Sequence record: KY555144.1
Direction: 5' to 3' (one strand)
DNA length: 64,000 nucleotides
The notes beneath the pieces were generated by a model, which was not told where the DNA came from, did not search any database, and was given only the letters and a program-made list of their open reading frames with translations. The position numbers and the translations under genes were made by a program. Shown one piece after another: positions 36,616-42,070 of this stretch. Within the stretch, counting starts at the first letter, position 1; each line of letters starts with the position of its first letter.

Positions 36616-38306
36616 TACCTGCCGTTGAAGGTGATCAGCGCCCGCTTGCCGTTCGGGTACTGCACGCAGTGGGTGTGCGCCCAGGACGAGGGGCCGGTGT
36701 TGTAGCCCATGTCCAGCTTCGAGGTCGTGCCGGTGTTGTAGGCGCTCTCGAAAATGCCGGGCGAGTGGGTATGACCAAACGTAGTCTTCGGGCCGATCTT
36801 GGCGAACTGCTGGATGTTGCCGCGCGAGCCGTTGGCGCCGTTATGCCCGTGGTTGGAGTGCTCGACCCCGCCAACGACGCAGGACTCGTCCTCGCGCAGG
36901 AACTTCACGCCGTTGCAGTTCCAGACGTCGAAGGCGTTGGTCATCACCTCCTCGAAGATCGAGAAGTTCTTTTCGCCGGTCCGGATCGAGGCGTAGACCG
37001 CCCGCTGGCAGGTGAGGAAGAACTCGGCGTTGACCGGGTCGGCGCGGTAGTCGGCCGTCTTCAGCCATTTGTTGAGCGCCAGATCGTGGTTGCTCTCGAC
37101 CACCGTGACCTTCGAGTCCGGGGCCTGCCGGCCCAGGATGGTCAGGAACATCGCCACCTCGCGTAGTTCCTGCTCGACGCTTTCGGAGCCCTTGACATAG
37201 AGCCGGAAGCGATCGTGCGGATCGGCGATGTTGTGGTGGTTGCGCGCCCGGAAGTCGGAGACGTCGTGGACGAAGATGTGCTCGGGCCGCAGGACGTCGA
37301 TCATCGACGGCGTCGCCACGCTACCCCACACCCGGCTCCCGTCGGCCGAGCGCTGCTCGGTCGGGAAGAAGCCGAAGGTGGCGGCCGACACCTCGGGATC
37401 GATCTGCGCCACGTGGACGTCGCCGGGCGTCAGGCAGGCCACGCGATGGCCCTCGGTGACCACGCCGTCCTTGACGAAGACGTCCAGGTCATAGAACGAG
37501 CCGTCGGTGTCGCCCAGCAGGTGGCGGCAGAAGAACTTGCCGTCCTCGTCGACCTCGACCAGCACCGCGCCCAACTGGTGGTGGAAGCTGGCCTTGATCC
37601 CGGCCTTCTTGGGAACGTAGTTCGGCTTGGTGACCGCGCCCGTCGTCATGATCTGCTTGGACGGGGTGTGCTTCATCGTCGGAACGCTGACGAGTTGCAC
37701 CTTGGCGTGGGGGAAGATGCCCCAGCGCTCGCGGGTGTAGGAGTGGAAGCCCGACAGCGGGTTCTCGGCCGTGGGGAGGGTGTTCATCTCGCCGCAGAAG
37801 TCGATCCGGTCGGCGATCCGCACGCGCTCGGCGACGAGGTATTCCATCACCCGCTTGTGGAAGAACGCCGCGTGCTTGGCGTGGTCCTCGAACAGGCGCT
37901 TGGAGTAGGTGAAGCCAGCGATCATGATCTCGCACGGCGCGTCCCGGCGCAGGTGCTCGGCATAGGCCTCCAGGTTGTCGACGAACTCCTCGTGGATGTG
38001 CGTCGAATCCTGGGCCGAGGACAGGATGAACCGCCGGCGCCCGGTGGTCTCATCCACCGTCACGGTCCGGGCGGCGGGCGCCGGCCGGTGCGACAGCGGG
38101 TCCTTGCGCATCGAGTAGAGGCGGTTCTGGAGCGTCGTGCGCTTGACGCTGTACTTGCGCGAGAACGCCCGCTGGCCGCCGGCCTTCTTGACCATCGCGT
38201 TCAGTTCTTCCGGCGACACCGAGTAGATGTCGAACGGACCCTCGGCCGGCAGGGCGGCCTTGGGCTTCTTGCCCGCCTTGGAAGCGTGTTCGAACTCAGC
38301 CGGCAT
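36603..38306 (-). CDS. Calcineurin-like metallophosphoesterase with N-terminal HTH-like region
   Basis: GDVH, HDVSDF, ESNHD, HGH and GHTH metal-binding motifs. Confidence 0.7.
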   Translation of the reverse strand: MPAEFEHASKAGKKPKAALPAEGPFDIYSVSPEELNAMVKKAGGQRAFSRKYSVKRTTLQNRLYSMRKDPLSHRPAPAARTVTVDETTGRRRFILSSAQDSTHIHEEFVDNLEAYAEHLRRDAPCEIMIAGFTYSKRLFEDHAKHAAFFHKRVMEYLVAERVRIADRIDFCGEMNTLPTAENPLSGFHSYTRERWGIFPHAKVQLVSVPTMKHTPSKQIMTTGAVTKPNYVPKKAGIKASFHHQLGAVLVEVDEDGKFFCRHLLGDTDGSFYDLDVFVKDGVVTEGHRVACLTPGDVHVAQIDPEVSAATFGFFPTEQRSADGSRVWGSVATPSMIDVLRPEHIFVHDVSDFRARNHHNIADPHDRFRLYVKGSESVEQELREVAMFLTILGRQAPDSKVTVVESNHDLALNKWLKTADYRADPVNAEFFLTCQRAVYASIRTGEKNFSIFEEVMTNAFDVWNCNGVKFLREDESCVVGGVEHSNHGHNGANGSRGNIQQFAKIGPKTTFGHTHSPGIFESAYNTGTTSKLDMGYNTGPSSWAHTHCVQYPNGKRALITFNGRYWRL

Positions 38307-39059: not shown

Positions 39060-39690
39060 GGCAACGGGCCGTCCTTCTGCATTAGCCCCGCCGCCGCGCC
39101 TTCCAGGCGGCACGGGCCGGGACGGTGGTTGGTGACGAGCAGGCCGAGGCAGCGGCGGGCGAGTCGAAGGAGAACCCGGCGAGCGGCGGAAGGCGTCGTT
39201 GACGCCCTCGGACTCGACAAGCACGTGGTGATGCCGGAAATCACCGCGATCGCGCGGACGTCTGGACGTTGCTAGGCGTAAGGCAGGCCTGCCGAGAAGT
39301 GGAAACGGCCGGGGCGGGCGGGACTTGATCTCGTCCGCCTTTCCGCCTAAGCTTCCCTCATTGCAGGCGCAGCACCGCCCTTCGCTAACGGCCCCGAGGG
39401 GTACGCAAGGGCTAGAAGCCTTGCCTGGGACAGGACTGCCTCTGATCCAGGAACGCCCTGGGCCGCGTAGCGCCCATGACGCGAACGCCGGCCGAGAATG
39501 GGCGACTAGGCGTGACGGCGGCCAGAGGCCGCAGCGACATTCCAAGCTCGATAGAGCGATCGGCGGGCCGGGGCGAAAGCCCTGTTTCGAGAGCCAGGGC
39601 AACCCGTCATAGGTCCTGGTCGGGCGACGAGGCAGCAAGTCCCGCGAACGGAGCCTCTGAGGTGGCGTCACCAAGATGCAGCAGACGCAA
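39060..39690 (+). ncRNA. Candidate ~630-nt highly structured ncRNA, family unknown
   Basis: Own promoter and terminator; no protein-like ORF; 5'/3' closing helix (CTGCAT 39077-39082 with ATGCAG 39676-39681); many local stems and GNRA loops. Confidence 0.6.
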
Positions 39691-39726: not shown

Positions 39727-39815
39727 TGGAGCTTCGGGAGGGACTCGAACCCTCATAGGTGTTCCCACCAGCAGAGATTTGCAATCCCGCGCCTAACCTC
39801 TCAGTCCACCGAAGC
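39727..39815 (-). tRNA. tRNA-Cys(GCA) with long variable arm
   Basis: GCTTCGG/CCGAAGC acceptor, U73, encoded CCA, TT-GCA-AA loop, GAGGG-TTCGAGT-CCCTC T-arm, V-arm GGTG-GGAA-CACC. Confidence 0.88.
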
Positions 39816-39862
39816 ACAAAAGGACCTCGACGCCCGAAGGCCCGAGGTCCGATCCGTAACCA

Positions 39863-39990
39863 GGGGAGGGCCGTAGCTGTCCCCTGACCCTGAACGACAG
39901 GTGGCGGGCTTGGTCGTCATCCCGTCAGGCTCGCGGCGCCGCTCGCCTGAACCGCCGATATGCCACGAGGGCAGTGATCCGCAGGTCCCC
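39863..39990 (+). ncRNA. 6S RNA-like molecule
   Basis: Rod with ~20-nt central bubble: GGGGA/TCCCC, CTGTCC/GGGCAG, GGCGGGC/GCTCGCC; GTCCCCTGACC and CCTGAACC resemble recalled 6S motifs; G-U pairs favour the + strand. Confidence 0.5.
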
Positions 39991-39999
39991 ACAAATAGC

Positions 40000-40034
40000 A
40001 AAAAGGCCACGATCCGCGAGGACCGTGGCCTTTT
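40000..40034. terminator. Bidirectional intrinsic terminator between the 6S-like and GOLLD-like RNAs
   Basis: AAAAA-GGCCACG...CGTGGCC-TTTT. Confidence 0.85.
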
Positions 40035-40040
40035 CGTTTT

Positions 40041-40913
40041 CCGATGGGCTGAGACTACACCCATCAGCAATCCCGCTTCGAGGATTATTCCCCAGGTGCG
40101 ACCCCAGGTATTCCCTCGACGTCCACCAGACCCCTTGCGGTAGTCCAGTCCGAGATCATCGCCGCCGTTCTTGCGCACCCCGAAGGGATTGCGGGTCTGG
40201 CGTTTGACCCATCATGGCGAACTACTCGACAGTTCCTTCCCCGCTGGGCTTGCGACCCACTCACCGGCGCTAACCGGCTGACGAAGCTCTTCCTATCGAC
40301 ACCTCGCGGGCTTGCGACCCTTGAGATGACTCCGTTACCCGAAGGCCGGAGCATTTGGCGACTTACGTCCGCCACTGGACCAGTCTTTGCGTTTTTCATC
40401 GAAGCGGGGATTGAACCCGCGACCGACAGCTTAAGAGGCTGTTGCACTACCACTGTGCTATTCGCAAACCCACCAAGACGTGCTGGTCCAGTTGTTCCCA
40501 GAGCTTTTGACCCCGGAAATGCAACACGCCTCATATCTTTCGCCTTGCGGGCTACTCGACTGCTCTTCAGGACTCCGTCTCCCCCAACCTTTCGGCCAGG
40601 ATGCCCAGCACCCCTCGAACTGAAGCAAAGCTCTTCACCGCGAAGTGTCGAACCCTGCAACCCAAACGGTTATCCGTACTCCCTAGACACGCTTGCACGG
40701 GATAGTCCGCTTGCGACGGACTGGCGGTTAAAGCCTCGGAGTTACCCCGGCCCCGCCTTGTCTCCCACGGTCTTCAGGTCTATCCCCTTTTGCAAGAGGC
40801 GGCCAGCTTCCCAGCCCGGACCCGTCGGCTTCCTCTGTCCTCTTGCGAGGTCGGGCGGCCTATGGGAGACCGTCCCTGTCACCCCGTCGCCGGGGCTTTC
40901 GTCAGAAGCGACG
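40041..40913 (-). ncRNA. GOLLD-like giant structured RNA (~870 nt)
   Basis: Promoter TTGACG-N15-GCTAGA upstream and terminator downstream; about ten GCAA tetraloop hairpins plus GAAA/UUCG loops on the minus strand; central tRNA-like domain; segments resembling recalled GOLLD consensus. Confidence 0.6.
40396..40467 (-). tRNA. tRNA-Lys(CTT)-like domain with defective acceptor stem, embedded in the GOLLD-like RNA
   Basis: Good D-arm, ACAGC-CT-CTT-AA-GCTGT anticodon arm, GCGGG-TTCAATC-CCCGC T-arm; only 4 Watson-Crick acceptor pairs and no CCA. Confidence 0.7.
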
Positions 40914-40920
40914 ATGACGT

Positions 40921-41030
40921 TCTAGCGACAGCCCACGTCGTCGTCAACGACTTTTTCCGTCTCGATGTCGAATTTTTTCGACAGTCGTGGATGACGACAG
41001 TGCTTGACATTCTCGTAAGCCCATGCTAGG
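40921..41030. promoter_or_regulatory. Divergent Caulobacter-type sigma70 promoters (GOLLD-like RNA on -, tmRNA on +)
   Basis: Minus: TTGACG (40942-40947)-N15-GCTAGA. Plus: TTGACA (41004-41009)-N15-GCTAGG. Confidence 0.75.
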
Positions 41031-41036
41031 TGTCGG

Positions 41037-41406
41037 AAATCGTTGTAATTCGGACAACGGAACTGGCGGCAAGACAGGGGTGCGAATCCCCTCGCCTCCA
41101 CCATCGACGCCCGGCGCTGGGAGTACGCGACTCCTGGGCAGGGAGTGTTACCCTGGCGGGCTGCGGCCCGAGCCAAAGGTAGCCGGGCGTCGTTGATGGG
41201 GGCGACTAGCTTTCGATTGGCGCTCGGGACTGAAAGACGCAACGGTGGGTGACCTCCACATCGGCTTGCCGGTGATCGGGTCAGGCAACAGTAAATGTCG
41301 CCGACAATGACAACGACGTCGTGGCTTTCGCCTCGGCTCGTGAAGCCATCGCCGCCTAATAAGCGGTAGAGGAGCCCGCCGGGAGCTTGGCAACAGAATC
41401 CCGGCA
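41037..41406 (+). ncRNA. ssrA: Two-piece circularly permuted tmRNA (alphaproteobacterial type)
   Basis: Acceptor piece ends CGCCTCC-A-CCA at 41103; coding piece starts GGGGGCG at 41198, giving a 7-bp stem with G3-U70; tag frame (V)ADNDNDVVAFASAREAIAA followed by two stops (41297-41362); GGCAACAGAA near the 3' end. Confidence 0.9.
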
Positions 41407-41540
41407 ACCCCCTTTCGCAGGCGGGAACACCAACAGGCGATCTGTCGGGCGACCGATTTCCGATCCGTGTTCCCGTCTTCGAAAGGTGGTCAGGCCTACC
41501 CTCTTGGTGTGCTATCCAAGGGTCTGGCCACTTTACAGAA

Positions 41541-41985: not shown

Positions 41986-42070
41986 GGTACGGTGGCTCGA
42001 CAGGTAAGGCATCGGCCTCATAAGCCGAGGGTTCGTCCCAATCCTGGTTCAAATCCAGGTCGTACCTCCA
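41986..42070 (+). tRNA. tRNA with CAT anticodon (Met or Ile2), long variable arm and U73
   Basis: GGTACGG/TCGTACC acceptor, TCGGC-CT-CAT-AA-GCCGA, 14-nt variable region, CCTGG-TTCAAAT-CCAGG, encoded CCA. Confidence 0.88.

Follow-up and report, generated by a model that had tools for sequence, protein, structure and literature searches.

A tRNA-Lys(CUU)-like cloverleaf without distal acceptor stem and CCA in the linker of the GOLLD RNA of Caulobacter phage CcrKarma

The 64,000-nucleotide stretch of sequence record KY555144.1 analysed here (the window) carries on its minus strand a gene for a GOLLD RNA, the linker of which holds a tRNA-derived cloverleaf closed in by a 9-bp helix. The structural part of the original prediction, which was made from the letters alone and described a GOLLD-like RNA with a tRNA-Lys(CUU)-like cloverleaf devoid of the distal acceptor stem and of CCA, is correct. 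Judging from sequence comparison, the embedded domain is quite likely an integral, non-chargeable tRNA mimic and not a tRNA gene. The accompanying proposal of a Lys-specific decoy is weakened by the alleles of sister phages. The domain may have a broader role as tRNA mimic or sponge.

The locus belongs to a phage genome. Positions 39990-40960 are 100% identical to Caulobacter phage CcrKarma (JX100811.1, hereafter Karma; window position = record position - 62810) and to phage Ccr5, and share 95-99.6% identity with ten other phiCbK-like phages. The Rfam GOLLD model (RF02032) covers 40046-40532 on the minus strand over its full length (model positions 1-416; 171.2 bits, gathering score 150, E=2.5e-46), and the identity of the locus as GOLLD is virtually certain. 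The conserved GOLLD core motifs (UCAAAAG loop, AGCAC, GCAA(A)AGNCU, GAGUAG, AUAAUCC and GUARUCUCAG) are all placed on conserved RF02032 columns, as are the motifs named in the original prediction (UCAAAAG, AGCAC, GCAAAGACU, GAGUAG, AUAAUCC and GUAGUCUCAGCC), and one of the ten pairs of the bracketed pseudoknot of the model is non-standard in this locus. The prediction had named the lack of both a GOLLD match and covariation as evidence against itself; a match of 171 bits over the whole model and covarying stems were found. It had also noted that GOLLD RNAs lie near tRNAs and sometimes contain one, which agrees with the tRNA-Cys gene, the two tRNA-Met genes and the tmRNA situated within 2 kb of the locus and with the cloverleaf in its linker.

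40046-40532, minus strand: conserved 3' domain of GOLLD with its linker, covered by the Rfam RF02032 match

The GenBank annotation at the locus consists of a 'tRNA-Lys' alone, or a 'tRNA-Gly' in phiCbK-type genomes, and the 2012 genome paper reported that Rfam gave no RNA besides tRNAs (PMC3556154). The locus is already known as GOLLD, since Kretsch et al. (2025; PMC12286853) list JX100811.1:c103342-102856 (window positions 40046-40532) and its phiCbK-like homologues in their GOLLD alignment (Supplementary File S3). It thus represents neither a new family nor a new member, and the presence of tRNAs in GOLLD linkers is likewise already published.

The linker comprises the following elements.

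40396-40467, minus strand: tRNA-shaped linker domain without CCA, made up of a remnant acceptor stem of 4 bp, the D and anticodon arms, a variable loop of 5 nt and the T arm
40431-40437, minus strand: loop of the anticodon arm, CUCUUAA, with the anticodon CUU at 40435-40433; site of the variation between sister phages
40483-40491, minus strand: 5' strand CUGGACCAG of the linker-closing long-range helix, pairing with 40375-40383 at 9/9 positions
40375-40383, minus strand: 3' strand CUGGUCCAG of the same helix, directly 3' of the conserved AAACGCAAAGA motif

ARAGORN called a tRNA-Lys(CUU) at 40395-40468, and the Rfam tRNA model matched 40400-40464 with 56.1 bits, covering model positions 4-67 only. 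Of the acceptor pairs only 4-7 (CGAA/UUCG) form; positions 3:70, 2:71 and 1:72 read G/A, U/U and U/G, respectively. The cloverleaf is followed after position 73 by AAAAAC, hence CCA is not encoded. The description of a tRNA-Lys with intact D, anticodon and T arms and no CCA therefore stands, while 'acceptor-less' was too strong a term, as four of the seven acceptor pairs remain. The Karma loop CUCUUAA is canonical, with U33 and a purine at position 37, and identical to the loop of the free tRNA-Lys(CUU) of the same phage.

The distal acceptor stem and CCA are, as encoded, absent throughout the clade. The comparison drew on about 40 related GOLLDs, and about 50 loci beyond those of the named phages came from IMG/VR by pattern scanning. 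Pairing statistics were calculated on a 35-sequence alignment. In this alignment, the frequency of pairs 1:72, 2:71 and 3:70 is 49%, 40% and 60%, compared with 47%, 43% and 53% after shuffling, and the 5' nucleotides of acceptor positions 1-3 belong to a conserved GGUU motif. None of the 28 embedded domains called by ARAGORN has an encoded CCA (0/28) or seven of seven acceptor pairs (0/28). As a control, 407 distinct free tRNAs of the same contigs were inspected, of which 398 encode CCA and 84% form all seven pairs, each acceptor position being paired in 92-99%. CCA also ends all four free tRNAs of the window, including the neighbouring tRNA-Cys and both tRNA-Met. Furthermore, the main tRNA cluster of Karma encodes a free tRNA-Lys(CUU), tRNA-Lys(UUU) and tRNA-Gly(UCC), each with a perfect acceptor stem and CCA, and the embedded domain is redundant for decoding because free tRNAs with these anticodons are already present. 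The annotated 'tRNA-Arg' of Phaeobacter phage MD18 (L247:762-835 (+)) is itself a GOLLD-embedded domain, with the loop CGUCUAA (G33), four acceptor pairs and no CCA. As such domains are annotated as tRNAs, phage tRNA gene counts that include these entries are inflated.

The rest of the cloverleaf is conserved as a structure. A homologous cloverleaf occurs at the same place in Mesorhizobium phage Cp1R7A-A1 (GOLLD 193.5 bits), Sinorhizobium phage Phosso (186.6 bits) and Phaeobacter phage MD18 (169.6 bits). In all of these and the IMG/VR loci, a 9-bp long-range helix closes the linker, with CAGCAC..GURGGUU located 5' of the cloverleaf and an A-rich stretch and AAACGCAAAGACUG located 3' of it. This closing helix is 96% paired across the 35 relatives, and three of its pairs vary on both sides. 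Over the closing helix, acceptor pairs 4-7 and the stems of the D, anticodon and T arms taken together, pairing reaches 97.7%, compared with 73% after shuffling and 32-41% for the slid controls, and 19 of the 27 pairs show changes on both sides. Four helices are 97-100% paired although mean column identity is 67%, and the elbow-forming GG of the D loop (G18, G19) and GTTC..A of the T loop (T54-C56) are invariant. This pattern of substitution shows selection for the D, anticodon and T arms, for the nucleotides of the elbow and for four acceptor pairs.

Most loci also keep a linker of tRNA size. In the IMG/VR scans with GUAGGU...AAACGCAAAGACUG, 52 loci had a tRNA-sized spacing (62-92 nt) from GUAGGU to the 3' motif, and two of these were random matches. 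Real GOLLD loci in these scans number 52, of which 50 have a tRNA-sized linker. Six loci had a shorter spacing, among which there was just one distinct real GOLLD (L233:4347-4779 (-), identical to L235; GOLLD 191 bits). This member of the same clade has a 45-nt linker without cloverleaf that holds CUUUUAA between CAAA and UUUG, perhaps a weak remnant of an anticodon arm or else a chance occurrence in AT-rich sequence. The linker of the Roseobacter phage DSS3P8 GOLLD is without cloverleaf as well. A scan of IMG/VR with the 14-mer AAACGCAAAGACTG alone gave mostly random matches, with L050 the only GOLLD among the matches listed. A scan for the other GOLLD subclass (GGTTCRA...AAGCAAAAGTCT) was mostly random and confirmed a GOLLD with embedded tRNA only in L219; L221 had no GOLLD match, and L217 was cut by the contig end.

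Contrasting with this conserved body, loop positions 33-37 (40436-40432) occur as three alleles among 12 phiCbK-like phages.

Loop allele UCUUA: Karma, Magneto, RBC57 and Swift
Loop allele GUCCU: phiCbK, Ccr2, Ccr10, Ccr29, Ccr32, Ccr34 and S2L
Loop allele AUCCU: BL57

Among the 11 closest phages, the remaining 480 nt of the 487-nt 3' domain contain just two polymorphic sites. BL57 has about 40 differences in the 5' domain, and its 3' domain differs only at 40502, 40497 and in the loop. Swift has phiCbK-type single nucleotide polymorphisms on both flanks (40586, 40343) yet a Karma-type loop, therefore the loop allele does not follow the history of its flanks. The UCC alleles, which are found in 8/12 phages, lack U33 and have U37, and the MD18 loop CGUCUAA also lacks U33. 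Across alphaproteobacterial phages the loops read CUU, UCC, UCU or CAG; taken together with UCC in 8/12 sister phages, this means that Lys identity is not conserved in the domain. An intramolecular partner of the loop was sought among the sites that co-vary with the loop alleles, and only 40045 roughly co-segregates, without being complementary.

Of 40 distinct embedded loops in the wider set, 11 read UUU, eight GUU, five CUU, three UCU and three UGU, with singletons making up the rest, and among the 39 loops of seven nucleotides U33 is present in 37 and A38 in 36. Pairs of embedded domains with at least 85% identity outside the loop differ in anticodon in 7/17 cases, each altering the amino-acid class and amounting to at least six separate switches, whereas pairs of free tRNAs under the same criterion differ in 11/210 cases, with isoacceptor changes only. 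Fisher tests returned p values of 7e-5 for all anticodon changes taken together and 3e-9 for those that alter the class (7/17 vs 0/210), which are indicative only, as pairs are not independent. The whole-body identity criterion replaced a grouping by identical 5-bp anticodon stems, which was rejected as a measure of loop hypervariability because unrelated free tRNAs share such stems equally often by chance. In addition, a long variable arm is missing from the 'tRNA-Leu(CAG)' version of the Mesorhizobium phage. Since class-changing anticodons occur on near-identical bodies, the anticodon is uncoupled from charging identity, while the loop mostly keeps a tRNA-like architecture. An exact scan for the 17-nt anticodon arm found no copy in any tRNA of Caulobacter or other Alphaproteobacteria among GTDB species representatives, and thus no sign of exact mimicry or of a donor tRNA.

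The RNA is encoded in a unit of about 915 nt from promoter to terminator, which contains three further features.

40919-40947, minus strand: RpoD (sigma-73) type host promoter, -35 TTGACG at 40947-40942, -10 GCTAGAAC at 40926-40919, N15 spacer
40533-40913, minus strand: lineage-specific 5' domain of the GOLLD RNA, between promoter and Rfam match and outside the Rfam model
39999-40036, minus strand: intrinsic terminator with a 17-pair stem, 4-nt loop and U tract

The TTGACG-N15 promoter that had been proposed conforms to the Caulobacter RpoD consensus (TTGaCgS / GCtANAWC; PMC8144410), and 40947-40919 on the minus strand is the sole full match to TTGACG-N(12-17)-GCTANAWC in the 64 kb, where shuffles lead one to expect 0.01. 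Both promoter boxes are kept in BL57, with a diverged spacer. The terminator (40036-39999), likewise proposed beforehand, is kept in 12/12 phiCbK-like phages. The noted richness in GCAA-, GAAA- and UUCG-capped hairpins holds up against chance, with 11 GNRA/UNCG-capped hairpins in the unit compared with 3.4 +/- 1.7 in shuffled sequence and 0/500 shuffles reaching 11. The 5' domain is 99% conserved across 11 phiCbK-like phages and shows five compensatory pair changes in BL57. Folded on its own, it has a z-score of just -0.9, which is uninformative in such GC-rich sequence, and the case for its structure thus rests mainly on conservation.

Open reading frames that overlap the unit were rejected as genes, as single-base indels in Swift and BL57 break their frames and the Karma annotation has no coding sequence there. 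In phage BL57, the annotated 'hypothetical protein' BL57_146c (L003:3011-3217 (+)) is located within the GOLLD 5' domain and is probably a spurious call. About 150 nt of unannotated sequence (39850-39998, minus strand) separate the GOLLD terminator from a second terminator (39843-39822) just upstream of the tRNA-Cys gene.

The explanation that we prefer is that of a phage GOLLD gene with a tethered, non-chargeable tRNA mimic in a docking or sponge role, which appears reasonably probable when its layers are weighted together. Host RNA polymerase would read the gene from the RpoD-type promoter to the intrinsic terminator. The cloverleaf would be neither released nor charged and would form a permanent, covalently tethered tRNA mimic. 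GOLLD cages have been solved for env-38 (14-mer) and Streptococcus agalactiae (12-mer), the only two for which self-assembly is known (PMC12286853, PMC12990946), and in the env-38 structure the linker is inside the cage (PMC12286853). By analogy with these, the Karma domain may face the cage interior in 10-14 copies. It would not supply a decoding tRNA; its tRNA shape and its anticodon arm would potentially let it serve as a docking site or sponge for a tRNA recogniser such as a nuclease, a modification enzyme or the ribosome. Conservation of the fold and elbow, together with loss of the acceptor end, favours a docking or sponge mimic over tRNA supply; as a mechanism, mimicry or sponging is put forward tentatively.

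Several points weigh against this explanation. Acceptor stems of four to six pairs without CCA are not strictly at odds with processing by RNase P/Z followed by CCA addition, the pair statistics are phylogenetically non-independent, and structural support for the 5' domain is weak. U33 is lost in three of the six alphaproteobacterial loop alleles (phiCbK, BL57 and MD18), where the loop may be unconstrained. Furthermore, the cage interior may be closed to proteins and thereby ill-suited to a sponge role.

Going further, the linker domain could be the working end of this GOLLD class, namely a non-chargeable scaffold of which each cage presents 10-14 copies with an exchangeable anticodon arm. Phages would retune the anticodon (Lys, Asn, Thr, Arg, Glu and others) so as to sequester or divert whichever anticodon-specific tRNA-targeting defence or other anticodon reader is used by their hosts. 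We consider this extension unlikely; if true, the loop alleles of Karma, phiCbK and BL57 would show it in action in a model system that is open to experiment.

A narrower version builds on the decoy of the original prediction, which named PrrC-type nucleases: a caged, non-chargeable tRNA-Lys(CUU) arm would titrate a host anticodon nuclease of the PrrC/RloC/PARIS type and spare the working tRNA-Lys pool. Karma itself fits this idea, as CUCUUAA is a perfect tRNA-Lys(CUU) loop shared with the free tRNA-Lys(CUU) of the phage, whose free Lys tRNAs carry an odd long variable arm. Three loop alleles on an identical body in 12 sister phages resemble a hotspot of an arms race, and fast loop turnover would also fit a decoy. 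In addition, UUU (11), GUU (8), CUU (5) and UGU (3) dominate the 40 unique embedded loops, and this enrichment of Lys, Asn and Thr loops in the wider clade coincides with the target set of the PARIS nuclease AriB, namely Lys(UUU), Thr(UGU) and Asn(GUU) (PMC12409363). However, eight of the 12 closest phages, which share the same laboratory host, carry UCC loops without U33, the Mesorhizobium, Sinorhizobium and Phaeobacter phage relatives read CAG or UCU, and the anticodon arm is without an exact alphaproteobacterial tRNA counterpart in the GTDB scan described above. Moreover, no such nuclease is known here for Caulobacter, and a location in the cage interior would hamper access. A decoy specific for Lys is thus quite unlikely.

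The idea that the domain is the cargo of an RNA cage, also part of the original prediction, is an already published suggestion (PMC12286853, PMC12990946). In the stored-tRNA reading, drawn in Kretsch et al. and, in the part of a 2026 review dealing with a Mycolicibacterium GOLLD with embedded tRNA-Phe, proposed as 'inhibited storage' (PMC12990946, citing Morgado 2020), the cage would block precursor maturation, and on its opening RNase P and RNase Z would release a functional tRNA that receives CCA and, here, decodes AAG. The intact D, anticodon and T arms, the elbow and the canonical Karma loop are in agreement with storage. Contrastingly, distal acceptor pairing is at chance level clade-wide, CCA is found in 0/28 embedded domains compared with 98% of the neighbouring free tRNAs, the anticodon switches amino-acid class on an unchanged body, the phiCbK, BL57 and MD18 alleles lack U33, the Mesorhizobium phage 'Leu' version lacks a long variable arm, and free Lys and Gly tRNAs are already encoded. 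A stored, functional tRNA is very unlikely on this evidence. Non-tRNA ends throughout the clade, a selected fold and an exchanged anticodon together argue against stored tRNA and for a tRNA-mimic role.

Equally improbable is an inert relic, that is, a tRNA gene trapped in a tolerant linker, decaying and merely filling space. Linker length is variable, the linker is disordered in solved structures, some clade members have no cloverleaf, and the acceptor end, CCA and in some lineages U33 have decayed, as expected of a relic. A decaying gene would, however, not account for four helices at 97-100% pairing with many compensatory changes at 67% mean column identity or for tRNA-sized linkers in 50/52 real GOLLD loci, and five adjacent loop substitutions on a 99%-identical background are not neutral drift. 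Least plausible of all is a processing signal comparable to tRNA punctuation or the MALAT1 mascRNA, in which the tRNA shape only recruits RNase P/RNase Z to cut between the 5' and 3' domains: the domain is located exactly between two structural domains, and conservation in it is highest in the elbow and T arm, the parts measured by RNase P, but the full acceptor stem expected of such a signal is not kept, GOLLDs of the same clade with short, cloverleaf-free linkers exist (L233, DSS3P8), and the published cages assembled from uncut transcripts (PMC12286853). Each of these last three readings is in conflict with at least one of the tests.

The surroundings of the GOLLD gene and the main tRNA cluster of Karma contain tRNAs of class II shape, in which a long variable arm is combined with an anticodon that is usual on short-arm tRNAs, all of them with CCA and full acceptor stems. 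Lys and Asn tRNAs of 88 nt in Mesorhizobium phage Cp1R7A-A1 are of the same kind.

39727-39815, minus strand: long-arm tRNA-Cys(GCA), 89 nt, CCA
41986-42070, plus strand: long-arm tRNA-Met(CAU), 85 nt, CCA
L208:36853-36939 (Karma main cluster): long-arm tRNA-Lys(CUU), 87 nt, CCA
L208:36945-37034 (Karma main cluster): long-arm tRNA-Lys(UUU), 90 nt, CCA

ARAGORN also called tRNAs for Thr(GGU), Ala(UGC) and Ile(AAU) in this cluster (L208:36670-36742, 37403-37473 and 39548-39622, respectively), which are unannotated in GenBank; according to the genome paper, no phiCbK-like phage has a Thr tRNA (PMC3556154). Adjoining the GOLLD promoter and divergent from it, the window furthermore encodes a permuted (two-piece) tmRNA at 41011-41450 on the plus strand (Rfam RF04321, 71.9 bits at 41041-41359; ARAGORN tag VADNDNDVVAFASAREAIAA), which is unannotated in GenBank JX100811. 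A GOLLD and a permuted tmRNA adjoin each other also in Phaeobacter phage MD18 (L247) and Roseobacter phage DSS3P8 (L248).

What this analysis adds are details of the embedded domain and a natural allele series in a tractable phage-host pair. Across a large clade, the embedded 'tRNA' appears systematically unable to act as a tRNA, with its fold under selection and its anticodon freely exchanged. The phiCbK-like phages of Caulobacter crescentus provide a natural series of three loop alleles, and as phage and host genetics are routine in C. crescentus, GOLLD function is directly testable there. To our knowledge, no function has been known for GOLLD since 2009, despite the cage structures now available.

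A tRNA-like fold as a module of a bigger RNA, as seen here, is also present in tmRNA, the tRNA-like structures of plant viruses and the MALAT1 mascRNA. In tmRNA and the viral tRNA-like structures, an aminoacylatable acceptor end is kept and a true anticodon arm is absent. The Karma domain is the reverse of these, with the anticodon arm kept and the acceptor end lost.

Like the GOLLD (RF02032) cages of env-38 and S. agalactiae, the Karma RNA matches the full-length model, is phage-borne near tRNA genes and would combine a conserved 3' domain with a variable 5' domain and a linker in between. The Karma version differs in being GC-rich, in belonging to an alphaproteobacterial phage, in having its own 5' domain and in carrying a cloverleaf where env-38 has a 42-nt disordered linker; by analogy it may assemble into a cage. 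A tRNA-like element inside the linker is shared with the mycobacterial and Mycolicibacterium GOLLDs (PMC6582537; PMC12990946), for which the mycobacterial study used the term pseudo-tRNA and did not detect a separate transcript from it (PMC6582537). Karma differs from these tRNA-Phe versions in its anticodon and in the phylum of its host. Finally, the tRNA-Lys, tRNA-Thr and tRNA-Asn of phage T5, which resist PARIS AriB (PMC11464382, PMC12409363), are likewise tRNA-shaped RNAs with Lys, Asn or Thr loops from a phage rich in tRNA genes. Whereas the T5 tRNAs are free and chargeable and replace cleaved host tRNAs, the Karma domain is tethered and has neither CCA nor a distal acceptor stem.

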